Shown: positions 3,771 to 19,730, counted from the first letter of the stretch. The stretch is 64,000 nucleotides of DNA from Tubulanus polymorphus (GCF_964204645.1 NC_134033.1:1880131-1944130), one strand, 5' to 3'. Translations and numbers: made by a program. The notes: generated from the sequence alone by a model not told the origin.

Positions 3771-5095
3771 TTGATTTGCAGACAATAACCAGTAGGTCTA
3801 ACGCGCTGACAGGACGTCTCACCATGCTATCAGGTTCGAATCCTGAAATTCAGTGGCTCACACAGGACCCGGGCTTGAATCGAGAGTTAAGCCGGGTGTA
3901 GGTCGCAGTGAGTAACAAGCCGTCGCAAGACCGACCTATAGTGAGTTAACTCCTATTCAAACAGGGGCACGAATTTCAAACCCGAATTGTAGAACTGGTC
4001 CTGAATCGAGTGGCAAACGCGACTATGCTTACTAAGGCAATCTAACGGATCCACCACGTGGCTCTAGTAAAGTAGGATTTAAGAATCTGTTTAAAAAGCC
4101 TAAAAGCGATTTAAAGTTTATGTATCACTAAAACTCATCACATATTTTAACCGTCCAGAAACGCGCCGAGAATCACTCCAACAATTATTAACAAATTCAT
4201 CCTGTAGATGACAGCACTGTTACAATAGTTGAAATCGTCGCAGCAAAAAACATAGAAATTGTCTTCATTTTGTGTTACAGCGCCACTTTGCACCAATTTA
4301 CAATTCTCATCAGTTTTAAGCATACAGCCTCGAATGAAATAACTAGCTGATTTTTCTTTATCGGCTATCTTCTAAAAATAAGAAGACATACATTCAATTG
4401 ATGGCGCTGAGACTAGGAGCTACACACGTGATCTCCTAAAGTCTACACTTTATTGATAAATCGCTAAAAAAAAGTCTTCCTTACCTCATTTGAATCAGAG
4501 AAAAGAAAGAGACTCAATTCTAAATTAATTTCAACAATATGTTTCCATGCCTACCATTTGAAATCATGTTCAAATCATCTTAATTCATGGTTCGTTGGCA
4601 TGAGAATGCAGGAAAAACAATGTTAGATTTTGAGAAATGGCTGTTCTTTTCTCATTTCAACATGAGAAATGAAGACTTTTTGACAATCCTTCAATACTAG
4701 TGTAAGTCAATGGATATAGAAACAATGGTACATATTTAAGGGGTTGTGTTAAAAAGTATCACTGCTTAGAAATTAATCCCATTTCACGAGGATTGGTGCG
4801 GGTGAGTTTCTATTTAAAAACGTTGGTTACACTTTGGAAAGATAATATACTGTCTGTCACACCTGCTCTCCGTGCGACGTTTTGGTCCGTAATTTCGTTA
4901 ATAGTGAGTTTATCTGTACATATTATGCATCAATTTGTCCGGTAAGGAATTTGCATTCAGATATAAATCATGAATTGGCATAAATTTGTTTGCGTTTTCA
5001 TCTATCGGCGATCGTTTACCTAGCATACGCTCGCGTAATGCTGAAAACAACTTTTGCGGCCCGTAACGTGGCGCCACCTACTGTATTTTGTTAAG

Positions 5096-5331
5096 CTAAT
5101 GAATAGGTGATGACGTATCTTCGACTCCCGTAGCGCAGTGCATTACGAAGTTTTGAATAGACAAAACACTTACCACACAGGTATGACCAATGGGACATGC
5201 GGTGCCTTTTACGTTTGTCTTGTAGGACTCGAGCTTGGCGTTAACTAATTTCTCACCAGTCGAGGTACCTTCATATATAGTTTTTTTACACTCGTTCATC
5301 GACGAAGAGTCTTCGATTACAGAAATTCCAA
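5096..5331 (-). CDS. Exon 3 of secreted Ly6/uPAR-like protein (VGISVIEDSSSMNECKK...TACPIGHTCVV...MHCATGVEDTSSPIH-stop); 3' end uncertain, possibly truncated
   Basis: 76-bp intron, acceptor TTTTTGTTGTCAG|, phase matches ORF 5096..5341. Four further Cys. Confidence 0.6.
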
Positions 5332-5407
5332 CTGACAACAAAAAGTAGACGAATTTACTTTATCGATGTAGAAAGTTTTAATCTAAATTTCTATATCCTA
5401 AACTCAC

Positions 5408-5500
5408 CCTTTTTGGCGAAGGCATTCAGCGGACCGAATCCGGATGAAGAGCCATGATCGTACCAGCAGGATGCGCATGTCAGATTTGAAAGAGCTGTTC
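5408..5500 (-). CDS. Exon 2 of secreted Ly6/uPAR-like protein (TALSNLTCASCWYDHGSSSGFGPLNAFAKK)
   Basis: Strong acceptor TTTTTTCTTTTCAG| and donor AAGG|GTGAGT. 93 bp, phase 1-1, open. L-x-C-x2-C motif directly after the signal peptide. Confidence 0.75.
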
Positions 5501-5559
5501 CTGAAAAGAAAAAATTAAATCAGCGTCTCTAACACTGAATTGTGTATATATAATTTTCT

Positions 5560-6712
5560 TACCAGCTGCGCTACGAGGACGTGGACAAACCGTGCGCGAG
5601 TCCACCCCCGGTCGACTAGGAAAAAGAAAGGGCGAAAAGAAAATAACCGACCAACTGGATATTGCTGGCTGGAAACCGCTCGTGAAAATGCTTTCCGCAG
5701 CGGTTTCAAGCTATGCCACCGAAAAAAAAACACTCGCGAAAACGGTCAAACTGCGGTAGCGGTTTCCAGCTACCGGCAACAATTTCCAGTTATTGCATGC
5801 AATAGTCCACTAGAAACCGACAAACGCGTGCCGTTAAGCCGGGCGTACGTACACAACCACCAGCGATGATCGCCTCGCAAAGACCCACCGACCTCGAAGG
5901 GACGTGGACAGTACTAATCATACACATATGCCCTCAAAGATAGAACCGAATGCGCTCGACCAAAACGCCGTCAAACTCAACATAACGATGTCGGCAGAGG
6001 GTATGAAAAAGCTACGAAAGAATATACGGATATACGTTTGCGATCAGCCGAAACACCAAATCTTACCAAAACCTCTAGCATTGAACCCACTCGCAACGGA
6101 CTCAGGGCGAACAAAAATAGAATTGGGGCCGGCGCAGGAAAACCCTGTTAATGCTTATGCGCAGTAAAACGCTGTAAGCTAACCATTGCTATCGTGTGGC
6201 CTCTCATTATAACCTGGTTAAGCCAAACCACGGATACGCCACTAACCAATGTTTTCCTGCGCCCGCCCGTTTGACCAAAACGTTTAGTTGGGGAACATGA
6301 GCGTATCTCATCGCCCGATAGCGGCAAATTTATAAACCGCTCGTGTGGCCACTGACGGCGACGACGATTTCGTCGGCCGACTCGATCGCCCGGCGAAAAG
6401 CCCGTATCAAACATGTTTGATACTTTCGCTCGATTATTTACGCCGTCGGATCGGCCGCAAAATTCACTCGTCTGCCAGCACTCGGTGAATTCCGCCGAGC
6501 GATCCATTTATATCAACCAATAGGATGCATTGTTGATATCATGCGACTTGTTAACCCTCTCGCACTAAGTGGCGGTCGCTGACTTCGGTTCGCCAAATTT
6601 CGGTTTGATCGCTACGTGTGCTTCTCGTATCGGGCGTTAAATTCGTCGGCGAAATCGCTGGCGAATTTAATCGGCGCGCGATCGGGCGAAAAAATACCCT
6701 CGTGTGTCCTTT
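5560..6712. mobile_element. GC-rich non-autonomous DNA-transposon relics in intron 1 of the secreted-protein gene
   Basis: Imperfect inverted repeat at ~5653-5680 vs ~5758-5791. Perfect 20-bp palindrome GTATCAAACATGTTTGATAC at 6404-6423. Repeated CTCGTGTG(G/T)CC ends. Confidence 0.4.
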
Positions 6713-7060
6713 AGACCAGGGCCTCTCAGTTAGGTCTCAGGCATACTTAACAACGACGATACCCAGAACGGCAGGCTACAAATAACTTCGAAACTTGCCT
6801 TAAACTATACACAGGCCTATGTTAAAACAGGTCGATAGCGACATGGAACACGGGAAGGAGATCCACCCTCCTTACCGTAGTCATTTAAACAAACAGAAAA
6901 AACATCTGATATATATTATGATTTTTAGTCGATATATCAACGTAAGTTCGAACCACGATTTAAAATCTTTTCCGTAAATCTTTACTTTTCACACCAGTAA
7001 ACATCTAATCGACAGTCCCCCCCCCCGCCAGTTTTCAACAATCATTTACTGAGTAATTAC

Positions 7061-7121
7061 CTTGAGCCAACAACAGAATCTGTAAAACTGCCGCCACAAA
7101 CATAATCTGTAACTGATCCAT
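7061..7121 (-). CDS. Exon 1 (signal peptide MDQLQIMFVAAVLQILLLAQG) of a small secreted Cys-containing Ly6/uPAR-like protein
   Basis: ATG at 7121, hydrophobic stretch, phase-1 donor CAAG|GTAATT at 7060. Confidence 0.65.
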
Positions 7122-8056
7122 CCTGTTATCTTCAGTAGAGTCGTTTAGTATCAACTGTATAACTGCTGTCGTCTGTCTCCAGTAGAACTGCTGTCGTCTG
7201 TCTCCAGTAGAACTGCTGTCGTCCGTTCACACAGGGTTTGTGTCCCAGTCTTCCTAGTTTGTGCTGTTTTGTGGTCCTCGTCTCACCCCGGAAACTGCAC
7301 AAGCTTCCAAAACAATTTATGATATAGAAATCTATTGATATATTTTCGCAATGATTCATCAGTCCAATCAATGTATGCTTATCTATGATTAAAAATTCCT
7401 GAATCTGGACTCCCAAACATTTCATAATTGTAAAATAGAAATGCCCCCAACAATGACACTCATCGACTAGCTAGGAAATATTTAAATGACAAGTGTTAAA
7501 TGCATCAAGGGACGTAGATCGCGGGCCCAGGAAGAAGAATCTTAATTGAATTTATGAAATAGATATTTGTGTCCCCTCTTCCCGGTGTGTGCTGTTTTGT
7601 GGCCCTCGTCTCACCCCGGAAACTGCGCAGGCTTCACAAAGAATTCTAAATCTATAGAAATCGAGAATTGATTAGTTCAATCAATGAATTTATATCTGAA
7701 ATGAAACATTTCATTATTGTAAAATTCTTCCGACAAAATAGAAATAACCCCTATCAACTTCACTTTAGGACTAAGGAAATCATCTTAACTTCAATATCTT
7801 AACGAATACATTTCAAATATATGAAGTTGATATATCAGATATTCTACCATCATTAAAATGAATCTTAAACCTATTTGCAATAGACTTTCAACTAATTCAA
7901 TGTGTACGGTTTGCGGACTTAGCTAAGTCGAGAGTCAAATCACTGGTGCAAATTAATAGGAATTGGGAGCATTTTTACTTTATGTAGAATAAAAATATTT
8001 CAAACTGAATTTTTTTAAACAAATCTTTTTTGCAACCAAGTATGTGAAGTGTATAT

Positions 8057-8780
<724 letters not shown>

Positions 8781-9238
8781 TCCAGCGAGGCAAACTGTTT
8801 TTCTTACTTAAATTTAATTTCTAGTCATCAGGAATGATAAATAGAGGCTGCTTTAAACCACTGCTCGAGCGGATAAGATAATACTTCGAAAAGTTGCATG
8901 ATTCATGACACTGTCATATGTTTGAGCTGCTCGTTTTATCACCGGGATTCGCGAACACGCGACCCCGATATTGAAAACCATCAGAAAATGCAAATATTTG
9001 ACAAACAAGCGAGAATTTACCGACGAGTTCTTATATTCCCCCGGAGAATGGATAAGATACGGTATCGGTAATATACGACAAGACATCGCTTTTTACGTCC
9101 TTATGAATATAATCGGATTATAGCTAGCGGATATATTATAGCTCTCTGAACCGTGGAACCGAGCGGACCGCTGGAGTTCGTAATCATAATTTCTATCTAC
9201 GTGTACTTTTAATAGGCTTTATCGGGATATCTGCGATA

Positions 9239-10090
9239 CGGGATATCGACAAATTCAAGTTCTTAAATTACTCGTTTGATGGCGCTAGTCAGAACCGTGG
9301 TTAGAGCGAAATAAATAAAACTAAACCTAAAATTTGGACCTAAATCCGCCATGTTCTAGTTCATTTGCAATGAAAATCTCTCGCTTCAAGTTTTCAATGA
9401 GCGATATTTTACTTACTATATATCGTCACGCATAATCCTTTAAATATGATATCCTACCGCTACGTTGGATATGATAAAACCTCACTGCAAAGGCTAGAAA
9501 TCACTATAAATGTCCTAAAATTATCAAAAAAACATTTTGCAACTGCTGACGATGCAAAGACTGGTTGCCAGGTATCACATGGTGGCAGCACTTGACGGCC
9601 CAATTTGAATTGTTGGTTCGAGTCCTGGTAATTTTCATATTTTTATTATGAATCTACGAGTTTAGTTCTTCTAAAATCAATTTTATTTCATAATATTATT
9701 TTATATTTATCATTGTAGCCTGCAATAAATTAACCTTAAGAGTCTTGAACTCAACAACAAAGTGATGACACCCGGCACCAGTCATTACTTCCGTTAGCTG
9801 CTTCGAGCGTCATCGCTAAATTTGTTATTTTTGGTAGTTTTTTTTTGCATTTCTAGTAATCTTGAGCGTTCGAAGCGGGGTTTTATCGAATTCAACACAT
9901 TGTCAGGATATCATACTCAAAGGATTATACGTGCCATTGTATAGTAAGGAAAATATCGCTAACTAAAAACTTGAAGCGAGAGATTTTTATTGCAAATGAA
10001 CTAGAACATGGCGAATTTAGGTTCCAATTTCCGGTTCTGACTAGCGCCATCAAACGAGGATTTCAAGAACTTGAATTTGTCGATATCCCG
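9239..10090. mobile_element. MITE with long (~220-280 bp) imperfect terminal inverted repeats, TA-flanked (Tc1/mariner-like)
   Basis: TA|CGGGATATCGACAAATTCAAGTTCTT...AAGAACTTGAATTTGTCGATATCCCG|TA. The arms align well inward. The same terminus recurs at ~24398. Confidence 0.8.
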
Positions 10091-10587
10091 TATTGCGCTG
10101 AGTTGTTTTTGATGTTCGGTCATGAAATGATTGGATGCAATTTAGTGACGTTTACTCGTCGGAAATCCTCGAGTTCAGTAGTGAATGATGTTTTGACGCG
10201 AGAGGCTTCCCGTCTCTCGCGTGTAACGATCAAATGATTACTGTGGGTTATGAGACAGATCAATGCTCACAGTATGAAGCAAAACGATTCTTGATTTATC
10301 CTTTATTTTCATAACGTGCGACATACAAAAATACACACGATTCAAGCCATGACCCACATTAAACTGTTTTTACATTCAATTCTGACCACTGGCAGTCGAG
10401 CAACCGCTAGAGGCGCTAGTAGTAAAATATAAAGTTACTTTCTCCACGAGTACCATACGACATCTACAATCGCATACATAATGACGTCACAAAGAGAATT
10501 TATGATTACAACCATATTCTATCCAGTTAATATGATGATGTGAAAAATGACGTCATAGGGAGATTTATGGGTGCAGCCATCTTGTTC

Positions 10588-11664
10588 TCATTGGCTTCGC
10601 GCGGAGGTCACTGAGTTTACGTGCGACAATGCGAAACCTCTATTCGTCACTCCGTTCTCCGACCCGAGCGTGCCACCGATGCACCCTCTATCGGGTATTA
10701 ATTCAAACATGGCCGACCGGAACTTGGTGCCGCTGATGACGTACAACAGGAAGTTGACGGCGTTGTTAAAGTAGGACAACAAATACAAACTGTCGTAAAT
10801 CATGTTTTGCGTGTCGTCGTTCAGATGATTGACATCGCAAAGAACGTAGATCGCGAAAGGGATCGTAGTGATCAAAAACGACGTATTCACCACCAGCAAC
10901 ATAACCGTCATACTAGTCAACCTCGAGCGCCGACTAGCGGCTGATGCCGACACTCGGTGGCTGTTGTACTCGACACGCCGGTTAATCCGGCGCACGCGCA
11001 GTATGATCGACACGTTACAGAAACTGATAATCAACCACGTGACCGAATAGACGGAGAAATCGATGTAAACCCAGATATTTTCGACGAAGTTGACGTAATG
11101 CGGCGTCGCGTAGCACCACGGCTTCGGTTCGTCCTCCATGTCAACAATAGTGATCGTTACGAACGCGTGGCTGTTTAGGGCGAATAACGCCAACGCCAAA
11201 CAGCCGACCATAATCCCGGCGTGTTTTAGCGAGAACCATCGTTTCGCTTTAGACGGCTGATAAACGGAAACGAAACGCTCGATGGCGATCAGCGCTAGGA
11301 TGCTGGACGAAAATTGCAACGTGAAATACATGAATACGGTTCTCAGTTTACAGATGACAGCACTCTCTTCGTAGAGACTGAATCCGCTGATCGCTTTAAT
11401 CCAAACGGGAAACAATCCGATCAACAAAGCTCCGTTATCGGAAAACGCGAGCACGATCAGTAGCATGCCCGTTGTGGACCTTCTCAACGCTTTAATCGCT
11501 AACAGGATCAGCGTGCTGGCGCTGTTTCCAAATACTCCGAGAATCACGACGAAAATGGCCGCGTAACAGTTTAGAAACGATATATACGCCTCGACCGACG
11601 GTTCGCGAGTCGGTCCGGGTTTAAGTAGCGTGTTATTCGTGTAATTAGCTGCCATGGTGGCCAT
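10588..11664 (-). CDS. Class A (rhodopsin-like) 7TM GPCR, FMRFamide/peptide-receptor-like invertebrate family; CDS intronless
   Basis: Seven hydrophobic segments: TM1 GVFGN, TM2 LAFSD, TM3 CK...IAIERF, ECL2 Cys, TM6 FLITTIP, TM7 NNAVNFLLY, helix 8 SGTKFR. N-terminal sequons NYT and NNT. ATG at 11664; the second ATG at 11655 has a perfect GCCACCATGG context. AATAAA at ~10301-10306. Confidence 0.93.
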   Translation of the reverse strand: MATMAANYTNNTLLKPGPTREPSVEAYISFLNCYAAIFVVILGVFGNSASTLILLAIKALRRSTTGMLLIVLAFSDNGALLIGLFPVWIKAISGFSLYEESAVICKLRTVFMYFTLQFSSSILALIAIERFVSVYQPSKAKRWFSLKHAGIMVGCLALALFALNSHAFVTITIVDMEDEPKPWCYATPHYVNFVENIWVYIDFSVYSVTWLIISFCNVSIILRVRRINRRVEYNSHRVSASAASRRSRLTSMTVMLLVVNTSFLITTIPFAIYVLCDVNHLNDDTQNMIYDSLYLLSYFNNAVNFLLYVISGTKFRSAMFELIPDRGCIGGTLGSENGVTNRGFALSHVNSVTSARSQ

Positions 11665-12097
11665 CTTTAAAAATACAAAATCCGTTGAGCCGAAAATTGA
11701 CAATATCTATTCTTCAGTACGAATAGCTGCCATAGCGGCGATCTTTAAATCCGTATTATTTGTGCACCGTTGAATATCTCATTTGTAAACGCGAATAGCT
11801 GCCATAGCGGCGATCTTTAAATCCATTTCATTTGTGCACCGATGAATATTTCATCTGTTAACATGAATAACTACCATAGCGGCGATCTTTGAATCCGCAT
11901 TATTGGCCCATCACTGGATATATCTATTTTTAAGACGGATGACTGCCATAGCGGCGATCTTCAAATCCATATTATTTCTCCATCGATGAATATCTCATTT
12001 GTCAACATGAATAACTGCCATAGCGGCGATCTTTAAATCCGATTTTGTGCATCGCGGGAATATTTCTCAGCGCGTTTAACTGCCATAGCGGCCGTGT
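11645..12097 (-). promoter_or_regulatory. 72-bp tandem array of the GPCR start-codon region, forming six short uORFs
   Basis: Conserved core AAGATCGCCGCTATGG(C/T)AG, with ATGs at 11733, 11805, 11877, 11949, 12021 and 12086, each followed by a nearby stop. Confidence 0.8.
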
Positions 12098-12596
12098 TTA
12101 ATATCCTCCCGTAGATTTATGCGCCAATAGAGGATATTATTCGATATGTTTTCCGGTGACTGGCGCGAAAACTGTCGCTGACCGTCTAGCGATTAACTAC
12201 CGTAGTTGTTATACGCAATCCGGGAGAGGTTGTGACGATGTGCGCTGGATAATCGAGACGCCAGTTACCGCAAAACGAGCGGAGGAAATTGCGTCGTAAA
12301 TATGTAATTACGACTCGTCGGAATTAATAGCGCTTCGGTCGACGCGTTACGAATACCGCAAAATCAAAGCATAATGATAATTCATCTGCGCGATCGAAAT
12401 GTGCTTTTTTCCTGTAAAGTGGTTTTAGCCATTTAGTCGTCAATCGTCTCCTATCTTGTAGCTATCGTCTGTTCTGAAGCCCTAAATGTAATCAGTACCA
12501 CAATGGATCGTGTAGATATACATATAACATCATTAGTTCCGTGTTGTTTTAATGCGTTGATTTAAAATGATTAAATTGTTTTGTCGCTATTGCTGT

Positions 12597-13310
12597 ATAT
12601 CTATGACTGCAGTGTTCAAATATGCAAGATACGAACTGTTAGAGTCTATATCTATGACTGCAGTGTTCAAATATGCAAGATACGAACTGTTAAGAGTCTA
12701 TATCTATGACTGCAGAGTTCCAATATGCAAGTTACGGACTGATTGAGTCTATATCTATGACTGCAGAGTTCCAATATGCAAGTTACGGACTGATTGAGTC
12801 TATATCTATGACTGCAGAGTTCCAATATGCAAGTTACGGACTGATTGAGTCTATATCTATGACTGCAGAGTTCCAATATGCAAGATACGGACTGATTGAG
12901 TCTATATCTATGACTGCAGAGTTCCAATATGCAAATTACGAACTTATTGAGTCTATATCTATGACTGCAGAGTTCCAATATGCAAGTTACGGACTGATTG
13001 AGTCTATATCTATGACTGCAGAGTTCCAATATGCAAGTTACGGACTGATTGAGTCTATATCTATGACTGCAGAGTTCCAATATGCAAGTTACGGACTGAT
13101 TGAGTCTATATCTATGACTGCAGAGTTCCAATATGCAAATTACGGACTGATTGAGTCTATATCTATGACTGCAGTGTTCCAATATGCAAGTTACGGACTG
13201 ATTGAGTCTATATCTATGACTGCAGAGTTCCAATATGCAAGTTACGAACTGATTGAGTCTATATCTATGACTGCAGAGTTCCCATATGCAAGTTACGAAC
13301 TGATAGAGTC
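12597..13310. repeat. 51-bp minisatellite, ~14 copies
   Basis: Unit TATATCTATGACTGCAGAGTTCCAATATGCAAGTTACGGACTGATTGAGTC, near-identical copies. Confidence 0.97.
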
Positions 13311-16027
13311 TGTTCGTCGTGTCGAAGTCGATTTTTATATGGTAATAGATCACGGAACGGCAGACGATAACAGTTCGACTGCTGGACGATACCGGTGACT
13401 ATTTTCCTAGTTTGATACTCTCGTGCTCAAAATCGATATTACTGTCTCGATTTTCCCGAATGAAGCCAATCATTTACCGCATATAGATTTGATATCTTTA
13501 TACTCGTTTTCCTTTTCTGTATTCAAATGGAAATATAGAAATCGGTTTCAAACACACGCAGATTCAGATACGGATATAGGACACGTGACAGATGGACGTG
13601 AACGGCAGACGATAAAAGTTCGACTGCTGGACGACACCGCGGGCGACTGACTCGTAAAATATTCATGGACCGTTCCTCCGATCAGAATGTACATCTTGAT
13701 GAAACGCCAGTCGTGATATAATAGCAATTCATGCCGAGTAAACAATCTAACGATTTTTTTTTGTACCGGAACTCCCGCGGTGAAGGTCGCGTGGACGTGA
13801 CTTCGAATGAAAGTCCGCGCCCGCTTTCTCGCTCGAGTAACGTTATGTTTTGATTGAAATTGACAGGAAAGAAATTGCTATTTGGATCAATGGTTATTAC
13901 GTTCTCTGAACTCCGGAGATGCAGTTATCTTCAAAAGGCGGATATTGCGCGTATAAAACCCTCGCGGGTATTGAAACGCTATCAGCCGGATTTCTGTGGT
14001 AACCGCCACTCTGTCATACACTACTGACTAGTGTGTACTCAATAAACAGATTTTTTCTCCAGAAAACGGTACAGAAATTGTCGCGTTTATCCGTGGAATA
14101 TTCTATAGTAGTTATCTAGAATTCTACGATACATTCATCACCGATATCACACGCCGCAACAAGCTGGCGTTCTGTGCTTCTTTATCGAAATCCGATACCG
14201 CGATTTTATCGTGACCAAAAACCGCGTAAACGTAACATTATCCTATCAAAACCATCAGTAACAATGTTTATTCATGAAAGCTTTCGCCGACATGACGAAA
14301 GACGTTGAAATTTTAGAATTCTTTTGAGTCTTTTCTTTCGCGCTACGTAATCTTAGTTGCCATAGCGGCGCTCTTGATTATTAATCACCGAGCGATAACC
14401 GGAGATTCCTTTTTATCAACAACGGTCTCGACGAGGTTTACAGAGGCCGATTGCGTAACAGAACTACGAATCATTAAACAAAAGTAGAAACTCTTTTTTT
14501 TACGCAAACGAACCGGCGAATTATGTTTCTATATATTGTAAGGTCCCGCCTGGATGTTCGGTACCGCGAAACGTAAATGTTTAGACAGCACTTTCAACGG
14601 GAAATCGTCAGTTTATTCTTAACGTATAATGTATCTTATACTGGTATTCAGTGTACGTGCAACTCAACGTCGTCTGCGTCGATACGGGGGTAAATATTTG
14701 CCGACAATCTCAATAGTGTCGAGATTGATTAAGAGATTCCGGTTCCACCGAATCGGTGCCCGTTCCACGAACAACTTCGCGACTTCTCAAAGATTAGGTC
14801 GCGTATTTTCCACCCTATCTAAACGGCAATGCGTACTTTCGCGATCTGTGAACGCTTCACAGCCTTATCAAAGATTAGTTGTTCTACGCGCGTGGTATGT
14901 AGGTCACGTATTCGTCGCCCTATTCTACGTAAGGCAATGCGAATGATTGGTGAGCTGTAAAAACTGGACTCGCTCACGATAACGAGATGGTAGCGTAGAG
15001 ATAATTCAATGACGGTGGCTATCTGAAACTAATCCGTACTGAAGATCTAAGATATAGCCTGCACACACGCGCTCAGCCGGCTATTAACTCCAATCACGGA
15101 TGTTATTAAGTAGAGATCCACGCTCTCTTCTGATGTCGTGATATAGTGATATATCGGATATCAAAAGTCCAATAACATTTGTTTTTTTCGTTGCTGAGTA
15201 AGGTTTTATGAACATCGACAATAGCGATGATGCGACCTTGACCTTGATGAACCGAGTCAACTGCGAACCGAGGATTTTTTAGTGCTCCAACAGATGGCGC
15301 TCATCGAAGCAGATCGTGTTTTGAATATTCAAATATAGATCCGGGTTCGTGAACTCTGCGGTGGGCCCGTTCCGGTTAGAACCTCCAGAGAGTCGACTAG
15401 CGGTGTCAGTCGCACGCCATATATGAATACAACCCTCTTGTGGCTGACTGCTATCTGTATTTATTAGTCCCGGCGGAGTGATTCCTGCGACTCCTCGAAG
15501 TTGGCGATAAAAATCCGGTGTATCGTCACTCCAGTCACGTGTACAGTATCTACGCCGGAAGTGTGACGTCACTCGGGCGATGGCGCGTAATTCTGAAAAA
15601 AATGAGAATCGATTCAATCGATTTTATTTTCAATTTATTTTCACGTTCAATTCAGATTGATCAATATTCTCCCCGACCTATCAGTTACAGGATAATTTTC
15701 AATTTATATTAATTCCCTCCCGATCTGTATCAGATAATTTACGCGCACAAGCTCCAGCAGATTACAGGGTTCCAGTGAACACAGACACAGGCGTTGATGC
15801 GACACTGTGTTGCTTGTTACGTATTGCAGGTGAAATCCTGCGAATAAGCCACCAATCTCCAGGCACGTGTTCGATCAATAAAATCTCCTAACCAAATTTC
15901 TGTTTTCTGTCTCATACACGAAACGTCAACTAATCGCACAGTTCGTCTGATATTTTTAAATTTCCAGTCTAGCGTTTTCCGCAGACGATGAAGAAGACTA
16001 CGCGTGCATGAGATAGAACCATCTTAC

Positions 16028-16240
16028 CTGATTAGTGTCAGCGTTCACAGAACAAGCCTCAGATCTTGTATATTTGCTTGTTTGCCGGCGTAAAAAATAA
16101 ACTCTGTCTCGTCTCTAAATCGACATCTAGTGTCGCCTGCCTTGAGATCGACGAGATCTAACTAAATGAATGCCTGGCAGTGAACTATTGAAGCTGATGA
16201 ATATAGATAGATCCCTTGACACTGGCTTGTCTTGTAAAAG
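16028..16240 (-). other. Candidate non-coding 5' UTR exon (GPCR transcript?)
   Basis: Acceptor TATTTTGCAG| and donor CAG|GTAAGA. No convincing ORF. Confidence 0.35.
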
Positions 16241-17508
16241 CTGCAAAATAATTTCGTAAACAGATGCTATTTATCACTTCAATCGGCTCTATAAATTCAG
16301 GGATTAGATTTCAGCATGACTTAAATGAAATAATGTATCATTTTAACGCAACTAGGGTCATCGTAACCATTGCATCGTAGCTCCTGGTGTTATTCGAAAT
16401 TGTTGAGCCAGTTCCACAGTTCCAGGACCCAATTCCTACGTGTTTTTGAGGGAAAAAAATGAAATTATTTCGCCAAGTCTAATTTACAACCTATGGAACT
16501 GGGTCCTGATATATCCTAATCACAGGGTTCAATTACACACTCGGCAGATGTTCCACAGACATTCACCATTTTCCCAAAACATGTTCGCCCAGGCCCCCCC
16601 CTGTGGCAGTACCCCAGACATGTCCCTACGAAAATGAATTAGGGCGTCGTGTCTGAATCATCTTTAGATTGACATTCACCATTTGTGAAGAAAAGCGTGT
16701 TCGTACAGAATTCGCCATTTAAAAAGCTGATCGAGTCGTCTGGAGGGGGATGGGAACAGACGACAGATTGTCAGCTGCATAAGTAAAGTCTACATTCATA
16801 ACCATAAAAATGTAGCGATATATCATTATTATTTCGTATAGTGGTAGCTTATAGAGAATAAACAACTGAGCAACCAGAACTGTGGAACTGAATCCACAGT
16901 TTTACGTGGAACAAATTTTATATTGATTGTCGATGGAAATTTTCTGATTTTAGAACTAAAAACTAAAACAATTGAGATGAACGACGGGATAAGATTTTGA
17001 AACATTGAATCTATACGAGAGACTAATCTTCTTCCTTGAATCAGAATCCGGTTCCACAGTTCAGGGTTAACTTCGATTTTATGGAGTTAAACAGGGGTGG
17101 ATTCTGGGTCGAAGTAAAACATAAAAACAATTGAGATTACGAATCGGAATCCGGAGTTAACTTCGATTTTATGGTGTTAAACAGGGACGGATTCTGGGTC
17201 AAAGTAAAACAATTGAGGTTACGAATCGGAACCCGGTTCCACAGTTCAAGAGTTAACTTCGATTTCATGGAGTTAAAATAGAGCGAAAATTCAAACAAAT
17301 TTTTGGGAAATTGAGTCAATACGATAAACTCGATCAAAATCTAGTGTTGACGATGTCCTCAGAATCGGGAGATGACGAACAAAACACAGTTGATTTGCAT
17401 GGATGAGAACTGAACTCTTTTAATCAACAGCCTTTGTATTCATAAACAATGCAACGTAATACTAGATAATGACGACTTCCAGTTGTACAGAATACACATC
17501 TACAGCCT

Positions 17509-17990
17509 CCCAAATCTAACTAATCAGCTCGATGACGAATTGGTGACCAGTTTATCGCGATTGAATTCATACCGCTTAGTGCGATTTACAGAACGGAGCG
17601 TTCTAACTTGTAACGAGCCAAATTTAGTCGGTTCTAAATAGCATAGTGGCAAAATACATAAAATCTAGAGCGTCCCAAATGGGAACGTGCCAAATCTAAC
17701 TAGTCAGCTCGATGACGAATTGGTGACCAGTTTATCGCAATTGAATTCATATCGCACAGTTAGATTTAGAACGGAGCGTTCTGACTTGTAACGAGCCAAA
17801 TTTCGACGGTTCTAAATAGCGTAGTGGCTAAATACATAAAATCAAGAGTGTCCCAAATGGGTACGTGCCAAATTCAACTATATCTATCAGCTCGATGACG
17901 AATTGGTGACCAGTTTATCGCAATTGAACTCATATCGCACAGTACGATTTAGAACGCACCGTTCTAACTTGGAACGGGCCAAATCTAAAC
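17509..17990. repeat. ~180-bp tandem repeat, ~2.6 copies
   Basis: TCAGCTCGATGACGAATTGGTGACCAGTTTATCGC recurs at ~17524, ~17704 and ~17887. Confidence 0.9.
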
Positions 17991-19469
17991 CGTACGGGCG
18001 ATTTTTTCGTTCGACGCCGAGCGAATATCGGGCAGTTGCTCGAGAATTGCTCGAAAACATCGCCTGTGTATATGTGTGCGCTAGGCTTACATAGCAGGGT
18101 TTAAAAATACACAACTGGTGGAACTGTTACGGTATGGGAAACAGTTGTTCAAATTTGTAAGTTACGTAAACAGAAAAATAAAAATACAGAACACGAGTTA
18201 AACGTAAACGTTATTGTAATACATACTGTTTATCTGCAGGTGCGAGTAACATATATGCGAAACATCATACATTCATTATTTCCCTGCTCAACACCGGGTG
18301 ATTTAATCCTTTACATCTTCACAATGAAATAACAGTCGGTTTTACTTAGATCAGGGTCCAATTTCACGAAAAGTTTAATGAGCTTTCATCGGTTTATCTT
18401 ATGATTGATTGAGAAAAATGAAATATTGAAGAAGTCTAACTTTTTGTGAAACCGGATCCACAATTTTTCCACAGGTAAAATTCAACTTATTGAAAATTAA
18501 CTCAGAGTTAACTCTAAATCACAACTCTGGAACTGGATCCTGAGTTCAGAGGTAACTCACAACGTGGAACTGGATCCCGAGTTCAGAGTTAACCCTACCT
18601 CGCACGTAGAACTGGATCCTGAGTTCAGAGTAAAGCCTCACTTATAATTGTTGAAATCCGTGGACCCAATGCTCAGAAGACTCGTCTTGTCCCCGTACTT
18701 CCCGTTATAAAGATGCGGCAGCTGATTTATAACTGCGGTGTTTCCCGTCAGTTCTCTGCTGCTGCCAGACGCAGCTCGCGAGATCTCGCGCAGTTTGTCG
18801 GGGATTTCCACTCTCTGACGGCCGTCTCGTCTGCGGCTTTCGAAAACCGTTAATCATTGTGTAAAACCAACAATAAATCAACCAATCATAAAATACCATC
18901 TTATCCCCCGGATTGAGCGTAAACCGGATGTTCGCAGTAACGAGTACTTCCGGAGATTTCAGGTAGCACCAAACTAAATCGTACACTGCTGAGATACCAA
19001 CCGCAATCGTTTACAGAAACTCATAACAACAAAAATGAAACAAAAGCGTCTAATGACCGACCCCTGGTGGGCTGAGGCGCTGATGAGGATTTTAGGGTTT
19101 GTTTAAATCAGGCAGGCCTTCCCCGGTGAAGGAAAACCGTCCGAAGTTATTCGGTACACGACCCTCTCCTGTCCCCTGTGAGTGAAAGGGTTTGTTTATT
19201 TCGCTGCAAACTGGCGCGCCGTATTTTTTCATCAATGCCGCCATCAATGCGCTATAAGCTTCGTAATAAAGTCTGCACCAATTCTCTCTGTGTTCCATGG
19301 ATATTTTTTCGACATTTTGGTGACACGTGTTCCCGTTTATTATGTGAATAGTTTAGGTTAATTGTTATATAAATGGCAGGTTTTGTAGCCAGAGACGAAA
19401 CATAAATAACCAGCGGAATCCGTGCTTAGATATCTGTGTAGAACTCCACAGAGAGTACTAAACTATTAT

Positions 19470-19730
19470 ACTGGAACTGGTTCAGAGACAAGCTAAACCC
19501 ACACAACTGTGGAACTGGATCCACAGTCAAATTCAACCCACATAACTGTGGAACTGGATCCACAGTCAAATTAAACCCGCACAACTGTGGAACTGGGTCC
19601 ACAGTCAAATTAAACCCACACAACTGTGGAGCTGGGTTCAGAATCAAATTAAACCCACACAACTGTGGAACTGGTTTCAGAGACAAATTAACTTTCAGAG
19701 ATCCAATTCAACTCCACGACTGTAGAATTG
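19470..19730. repeat. 39-bp tandem repeat of the dispersed ACTGTGGAACTGG family
   Basis: CACAACTGTGGAACTGG(A/G)TCCACAGTCAAATT units. The same core occurs at ~18525-18630, 29016-29120, 53915-54050 and 54440-54720. Confidence 0.88.

Follow-up and report, generated by a model that had tools for sequence, protein, structure and literature searches.

Introduction

Several kinds of element that act at the 5' end of genes have been described, some of them repeated in tandem. PRE-PIK3C2B, a human YY1/Pho silencer array, is made of 25 head-to-tail copies of a 25-mer with one GCCAT core in each unit, and arrays of this type lie next to or inside the 5' part of a gene; their repression grows with the number of units, which sets a precedent for an effect of copy number (PMC3689693). 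MAOA-uVNTR, a variable number tandem repeat (VNTR) with a 30-bp unit, is a minisatellite located shortly upstream of the coding start, with a variable number of units and a plausible effect on transcription (PMC5874270). TISU is a YY1-binding element that doubles as the start codon in mRNAs whose leaders are very short, in an AAGAUGG context; it is located at +5 to +30 from the transcription start site (TSS), and its positions 5-12 are essential (PMC2518114). At the level of translation, the leaders of GCN4 and ATF4 carry two to four ordered, short upstream open reading frames (uORFs) (PMC13674258, PMC11058473); the last of those in ATF4 is inhibitory, and uORF2 of ATF4 overlaps the main open reading frame (ORF) (PMC11058473). 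The locus described here, in the 268-Mb genome of the nemertean Tubulanus polymorphus, shares features with each of these systems: it is a tandem array of units of about 72 bp that immediately precedes the start codon of an intronless G protein-coupled receptor (GPCR) gene. Coordinates refer to the window, the whole stretch of 64,000 nt that was analysed (G000:C9:1880131-1944130), and the array is called on the minus strand, on which all of its elements listed below, the solo core-like copy and the receptor gene lie.

An array built from the start region of its own gene

Tandem Repeats Finder detected a 72-bp period at 11719-12041 (4.5 copies, 79% matches), and, together with an alignment of the units, it delimits six upstream repeat units (11668-12098) of 78, 72, 72, 72, 72 and 65 nt, each consisting of a 19-nt core and an AT-rich spacer. 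The core, AAGATCGCCGCTATGGCAG, finds eight matches in the window at three or fewer mismatches, against 0.02 expected. Upstream of the gene there are six cores, with 5' ends at 12098, 12033, 11961, 11889, 11817 and 11745. From the gene outwards they are core 6 (AAGATCGCCGCTATGGCAG, 11727-11745), core 5 (exact, 11799-11817), core 4 (one mismatch, ATGGTAG, 11871-11889), core 3 (exact, 11943-11961), core 2 (exact, 12015-12033) and the distal core 1 (AACACGGCCGCTATGGCAG, 12080-12098). The start of the gene itself, AAGATGGCCACCATGGCAG (11649-11667), is a seventh core and holds two ATGs, the first inside a Pho/YY1/TISU-like word whose reverse complement is GTGGCCATCTT, and the second inside GCCACCATGG. 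Six head-to-tail units in the 10-100 bp range, in addition to the gene-start core, thus make up a minisatellite, or VNTR, at the 5' end of a gene.

All six upstream cores keep an ATG with G at -3 and +4, in the frame of the receptor in five of the six cases, and each ATG opens a short ORF. Cores 6 to 2 encode MAAIRTEE, MAAIRVYK, MVVIHVNR, MAVIRLKNRYIQ and MAVIHVDK, respectively, each followed by a stop codon, and core 1 opens an ORF of 17 codons that is not in the receptor frame; four of the ORFs stop at codon 9. The six core copies, their spacings, contexts, peptides and stop codons are all present as given in a preliminary description made from the sequence, and the considerable divergence that it reported between the cores is equally real, the spacers within the array being 17-40% apart. 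Two features had escaped it, namely 12 more ATGs outside the cores and the fact that the codon-9 TGA stops (n = 3) fall in one repeat column.

The array was built by tandem duplication of the start-codon region of the gene and some 53 nt of the 5' flank adjoining it. Homology between the gene and the units comprises the flank that precedes the core (ACGGATTT...TTAAAG) and the core up to GCAGCTA, where it ends, and the spacers bear no resemblance to the coding sequence past the core (p 0.16-0.93). The proposal that the gene's own initiation site had been duplicated is thereby borne out, with the specification that the homology spans flank and core and not the coding sequence beyond. The spacer-like flank that borders the distal core on the left (52 nt, 12099-12150) aligns collinearly with the spacers inside the array (p 0.015-0.09 per unit), and the array can therefore be described as seven repetitions of a spacer of about 53 nt followed by a core.

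A DNA search of the whole genome with the array returned only the window locus and C9:1022089-1022472, upstream of the closest paralogue of the receptor, and a transposon or dispersed satellite was therefore discarded as the source of the 72-bp unit. Six units lie upstream of the window gene and three upstream of the paralogue, so that the number of units differs between the two paralogues. In the paralogue, the proximal core carries one substitution and a 3-nt deletion, and the start lacks the second ATG. The spacers of orthologous units (the 11817 unit and the middle unit of the paralogue) differ by 11%, which is close to the neutral divergence of the two genes (dS 0.10) and indicates that spacers do not evolve unusually fast; because spacers differ by 17-40% within the array and by 11% between orthologues, the array predates the segmental duplication that carries the two genes.

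The 19-nt core is constrained. Among the five gap-free units, variable columns amount to 1/19 in the core and 28/53 in the spacer (Fisher p 2.5e-4), and the contrast holds when any 19-column window is allowed (p 0.005). Conservation reaches 12 nt or more beyond the core ATG on its 5' side, GGATTTA ahead of the block being also fairly conserved, and to judge by the aligned units the block is wider than an initiation context would need. The preliminary description had raised the question whether ATG and stop positions are more conserved than their flanks; in the aligned units the cores vary less than the spacers, and the codon-9 TGA stops are shared by descent.

Kinship of the core with a genome-wide DNA word

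The core is related to a word that is common throughout the genome: it is a one-base variant of the Pho/YY1/TISU-type word AAGATGGCCGC, which is about 11-fold over-represented genome-wide and is also found in a repeat family and in satellites. AAGATGGCYRC occurs 4652 times in the genome (402 in the control), and AAGATGGCGGC 603 times (56 in the control). The pattern AAGATSGCNNNNATGGCAG occurs 38 times, against none in a reversed control, and the double word AAGATGGCYRYYATGGC 18 times, against one; the latter sites are dispersed loci whose flanks are mostly unrelated, and in most of them a stop follows within 4-14 codons. The C variant of the word is present at only four loci of the genome. Read as their reverse complements, GCGGCCATCTT and GCCGCCATCTT, AAGATGGCYRC and AAGATGGCGGC agree with the expanded Pho consensus, G(C/A)(C/G)GCCAT(T/C)TT (PMC3852391), to which the gene-start copy GTGGCCATCTT conforms at 10 of 11 positions; in the upstream cores the same segment (GCGGCGATCTT) retains perfect flanks around a mutated core. 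A GCCAT is nevertheless found in every unit: the plus strand reads CTGCCATAG there, except for the 11889 unit with CTACCATAG, and the gene-start copy has two, a 5-mer being weak evidence by itself.

The likeness to TISU concerns mostly the gene-start copy, in which the first ATG lies in AAGATGGCC and has the AAGAUGG context, so that one sequence could be both a DNA site and a start codon; the over-represented words AAGATGGCGGC and AAGATGGCCGC are related to it as well. The consensus of TISU is approximately SAASATGGCGGC, and its leaders measure about 12 nt. Compared with that consensus, the gene-start copy AAAGATGGCCAC keeps AAGATGGC and departs from it in its 3' part, after ATGGC. The six upstream copies, unlike TISU, lack its ATG, having ATC or ACG in its place, and at TISU positions 5-12 all six read ATCGCCGC or ACGGCCGC.

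A possible cluster of cis-acting DNA sites

These observations can be accommodated by a reading that is tentatively favoured here, in which the array may be a promoter-proximal minisatellite of a cis-acting DNA site that acts on transcription. About 53 nt upstream of the GPCR start, together with the start-codon region, were tandemly duplicated into a gene-proximal 72-bp minisatellite, well before the segmental duplication that made the two paralogues. The start region was a Pho/YY1/TISU-type word, ancestrally approximately AAGATGGCCGCTATGGCAG, of a kind common across the genome, whose first ATG (the CCAT core of the word) has been lost in all upstream copies, giving ATC in the five inner ones and ACG in the distal one, while the remaining 19-nt core stayed near-invariant as the spacers drifted by 17-40%. 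The cores would have been retained as a homotypic cluster for a sequence-specific factor, presumably not canonical YY1 at the mutated half, and might modulate transcription of the receptor in a copy-number-dependent manner, their ATGs and short ORFs being possible by-products of the motif sequence. The constraint would thus act on DNA and not on RNA, and transcription would start downstream of most of the array. It is consistent with such a DNA site that the remoter paralogues, which have neither word nor array, have ATG-free leaders, and that the 68 nt directly before the receptor start codon contain no ATG.

By analogy, the locus would belong with promoter and 5' VNTRs and with arrays of YY1 sites (PMC5874270, PMC3689693). 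It differs from MAOA-uVNTR and its like in that the units hold copies of a start-codon region, which is not a classical feature of such repeats, and from YY1/Pho arrays in that the unit measures 72 nt and derives from the gene's own start. It differs from the latter also in the site itself: the GCCAT that survives in the upstream cores (CTGCCATAGC) has non-consensus flanks (CT.. and AGC), and the half that retains consensus flanks reads GCGAT (PMC3852391).

This last difference is among several observations that weigh against a cluster of DNA sites. The CCAT of the Pho/YY1 word is missing from the upstream cores, where five units have AAGATCGCC and the distal unit AACACGGCC, and as CCAT is lost and the remaining GCCAT is flanked by non-consensus bases, no known factor can be assigned to the cores. 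Away from the two GPCR loci, the 13-mer GCCGCTATGGCAG shows no over-representation (nine matches, six in the control), and 9 of 20 sampled AAGATGGCCGC sites (~45%) belong to one repeat family, which partly inflates the enrichment of that word. Constraint is not evident in every copy either, the proximal core of the paralogue being damaged. Lastly, the 20-mer CTCTATTGGCGCATAAATCT (12113-12132), which contains an inverted CCAAT and a TATA-like word, CATAAAT, is identical in the paralogue; bordered on its left by strongly diverged sequence, and some 25-30 nt from the distal core on the upstream side, it is the only perfectly conserved block that adjoins the array. The block may be an upstream promoter element, and if transcription did start from it, the whole array would lie in the leader.

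Translational control and other readings

The preliminary description had read the array as a translational attenuator: if the repeats were part of the leader, serial short uORFs would limit the number of ribosomes that reach the receptor start, to an extent tuned by the number of units and possibly responsive to stress, main-ORF translation in leaders of the GCN4/ATF4 type being responsive to eIF2-alpha phosphorylation. This reading, which is neither supported nor refuted by the analysis and is considered distinctly unlikely, draws on the strong context of the six core ATGs, on ORFs of 8-17 codons that all end before the main ATG, on the retention of ATG and short ORF in all nine upstream copies of both paralogues (the three of the paralogue included), on the loss of the first ATG of the duplicated start from every upstream copy, on the position of the CCAAT/TATA-like block CTCTATTGGCGCATAAATCT and on the different copy numbers of the paralogues. 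As in GCN4 and ATF4, the main ORF is preceded by several short ORFs of at most 19 codons (PMC13674258, PMC11058473); here, however, they are repeat copies, and they form no ordered ladder. The putative leader (12086-11733) contains, on the coding strand, not six but 18 upstream ATGs, of which nine have a strong context, and some of their ORFs are nested or overlap; 12 of the 18 lie outside the cores, three of these in strong context. Nor are ATGs depleted in the array, in contrast to the 190-280 nt that precede the starts of the remoter paralogues. The 3' end of the last uORF, at 11707, is separated from the main ATG by 42 nt, and none of the uORFs shows the overlap with the main ORF that uORF2 of ATF4 has (PMC11058473). 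The lengths of the uORFs are those that AT-rich random sequence gives, the conserved block exceeds an initiation context and is akin to a DNA word of satellites and a repeat family, and the three codon-9 TGA stops, sitting in one homologous column, were inherited rather than independently kept. So many strong upstream ATGs should, moreover, nearly abolish translation of the receptor, which is hard to reconcile with its dN/dS of 0.36. The further suggestion of a strong-context uORF ladder in the mRNA that unequal exchange (six units, three units) would turn into a heritable, stepwise translational rheostat is regarded as improbable.

Other explanations place no function in the cores, a different factor on them, or the array outside the mRNA. 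That the array is a neutral minisatellite, in which GC-biased repair or conversion in favour of the GC-rich core, or exchanges within it, conserved the core, while growth and shrinkage of the array were tolerated beside a weakly expressed, lineage-specific receptor, is unlikely, although a number of features agree with it: confinement to one young gene pair with varying copy number, the damaged proximal core of the paralogue, a core 13-mer that is not enriched elsewhere, the absence of the window gene from a protein collection in which its paralogue is present, and a 51-bp satellite (14 copies) 500 nt upstream, which marks the region as repeat-prone. What it explains poorly is the 19-nt block itself, which shows one change where about 12 would be expected at the spacer rate, a result that is hard to obtain without selection; in addition, orthologous spacers evolve at the neutral rate, and the two CpGs of the core are intact. 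An intronic position of the array, in which the acceptor-like TTTTGTATTTTTAAAG just before the ATG would connect the coding exon with a remote non-coding exon at the 5' end and the repeats would be spliced out and have no bearing on translation, is quite doubtful. A pyrimidine-rich tract with AG does abut the first ATG, and the 1-kb block at 14100-15150 (96-98% identity, 90% at the neutral level) could hold an exon or a promoter; AAG is nonetheless a weak acceptor, and the remoter, intronless paralogues have no AG before their ATG. A further alternative from the preliminary description, that the cores are X-box-like sites for RFX which link the receptor to ciliated sensory neurons, is very improbable. 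The X-box consensus is RYYRYY N1-3 RRNRAC, and its 3' half is the well-matched one in real sites (PMC4168999); the core is a degenerate palindrome, GCYGCY-AT-RGCRGC, with X-box spacing, and, whichever way it is read, agrees with RYYRYY-N2-RRNRAC at 11 of 12 positions. The part of the proposal that stood is the solo core-like copy AAGAGCGCCGCTATGGCAA(C) (14357-14375, 17/19), regarded as another site: reading GCCGCT-AT-GGCAAC, it fits the consensus at 12 of 12 positions, with the canonical half ATGGCAAC (PMC4168999), and it is kept in the paralogue within a stretch identical at 137 of 140 positions. It carries little weight, however, because a stretch of 64 kb should contain tens of chance matches to so degenerate a consensus. 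The cores of the array, GCCGCT-AT-GGCAGY (on the opposite strand GCTGCC-AT-AGCGGC), carry a G in place of the A that RAC requires in the 3' half-site, and RFX leaves unexplained the extension of the conserved block 5' of the X-box-like part (AAGATC). The last alternative of that description, a disabled N-terminal ectodomain suggested by CTNNT in one unit and YTNNT in the receptor, was rejected: the match is a chance one (p 0.16) at a non-homologous position of the unit, the stretch encoding CTNNT (CACAAATAATACG) aligns with the 5' flank of the gene and not with the YTNNT codons, and the spacers are unlike the coding sequence past the core.

Three further candidates were set aside. An ATG-free run of 286 nt upstream of the distal core was considered as a sign of a leader and is uninformative, as runs of at least 280 nt cover 14% of the window; a scan for bacterial-type promoters and terminators is irrelevant to an animal genome; and a structured RNA or microRNA cluster was dismissed since both strands fold worse than shuffled sequences (z +1.5 and +1.6). 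A search of Rfam with the array gave no match at E values up to 1.

The receptor gene and its surroundings

The receptor ORF (10588-11664; coding part 10591-11664) has no introns and encodes 358 amino acids followed by a stop. Its product matches the Pfam family 7tm_1 (E 6.3e-23) and is a genuine seven-transmembrane (7TM) protein of the rhodopsin family; its first ATG is at 11664 and a second, in-frame ATG at 11655. The top protein matches all come from T. polymorphus. The closest, XP_074658164.1, is 93% identical in amino acids and 95% in nucleotides, with dS 0.10 and a dN/dS of 0.36 that indicates purifying selection, and its locus lies 870 kb away on the same chromosome, C9. Both paralogues and their repeats are carried inside a segmental duplication that is collinear over 15 kb or more (window 5000-19700 and G000:C9:1013486-1028997), with block identities of 79-96%. 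Both word and array are missing from the remoter paralogues, which lie on C5 and C1, and 190-280 nt before their start codons are free of ATG.

The window ORF is intact, yet its product is absent from a collection of 15 billion proteins, in which XP_074658164.1 and three remoter relatives from the same genome are RefSeq entries; an exact look-up and a search for contigs that encode it likewise yielded no record in the collections. The gene may be unannotated or modelled differently.

Two non-coding blocks further upstream (14100-15150 and 15320-15620) are 96-98% identical between the duplicates and occur in only two copies in the genome. Their identity exceeds both the neutral level (dS 0.10, ~90%) and that of the receptor coding sequence (95%), and they overlap the minus-strand ATG-free runs 14474-15178 and 15420-15915; a conserved regulatory function, a non-coding exon or a tract of conversion could each account for them. 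The 51-bp satellite (14 copies, 96% identity), at 12596-13311, is also present at the paralogous locus with another copy number. The observed/expected CpG ratio is 1.7-1.9 over the receptor, the array and the upstream region (10591-16500), compared with 1.11 for the whole window; being high in coding sequence, array and flank alike, it does not discriminate between them.

Other loci that carry the word

Tandem arrays of the double word are found at four other loci, with periods of 30, 32, ~40 and 93 nt: on C15 (30-nt period), C12 (32-nt period), C6 (irregular spacing) and C8 (93 nt). The units of the C15 satellite (G000:C15:176957-177395) open with the double word AAGATGGCTGCAATGGCAG, and those of the C12 satellite (G000:C12:1823334-1823635) with AAGATGGCTGGCATGGCAG. 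The repeat family to which 9 of the 20 sampled AAGATGGCCGC sites belong is dispersed over several places on C1, measures at least 0.7 kb, repeats internally every 154 bp or so, and contains ...GACACCAAGATGGCCGCCAATTGCGTCATAATTGG....

On C8 (G000:C8:12452968-12453079, minus strand), a first exon that runs from MAVMAEILDLL... to ...GKLVLITGAG begins with AAGATGGCTGTCATGGCAG; its gene, unrelated to the receptor, encodes a product that presumably resembles a short-chain dehydrogenase. A copy of this start region 93 nt upstream reads AAGATCGCTGCTATGGCAG, in which the first ATG has again become ATC. The parallel change was not retained as evidence of selection, because the locus was located by searching for the C variant, which amounts to ascertainment bias. 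The length of the ORF that follows the motif ATG likewise proved unreliable as a genome-wide indicator of start codons, one long ORF being an internal FOXO exon. On C10 (G000:C10:1857707-1860725, at ~1615-1760), two words that resemble the CTCF consensus, CAGCAGATGGCGCT and CAGCAGGTGGCGCT, lie about 110 nt apart, each some 10-12 nt ahead of a AAGATGGCCGC or AAAATGGCTGC word and beside a perfect AAGATGGCCGCTATGGCAG.

Implications

At present the locus is of modest interest, a curiosity of one lineage. Duplications of this kind automatically create upstream ATGs in strong context, which bears on the birth of uORFs, and the array is a warning against inferring uORF function from sequence alone. 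If the cores were binding sites, the array would offer a clean natural case of a site cluster made by repeated copying of a gene's start region, and the paralogue, with its different number of units, would serve as an internal comparison; almost no cis-regulatory data are available for the phylum. The abundance of a Pho/YY1/TISU-type word in a nemertean, in turn, provides a lead for promoter annotation in Spiralia.

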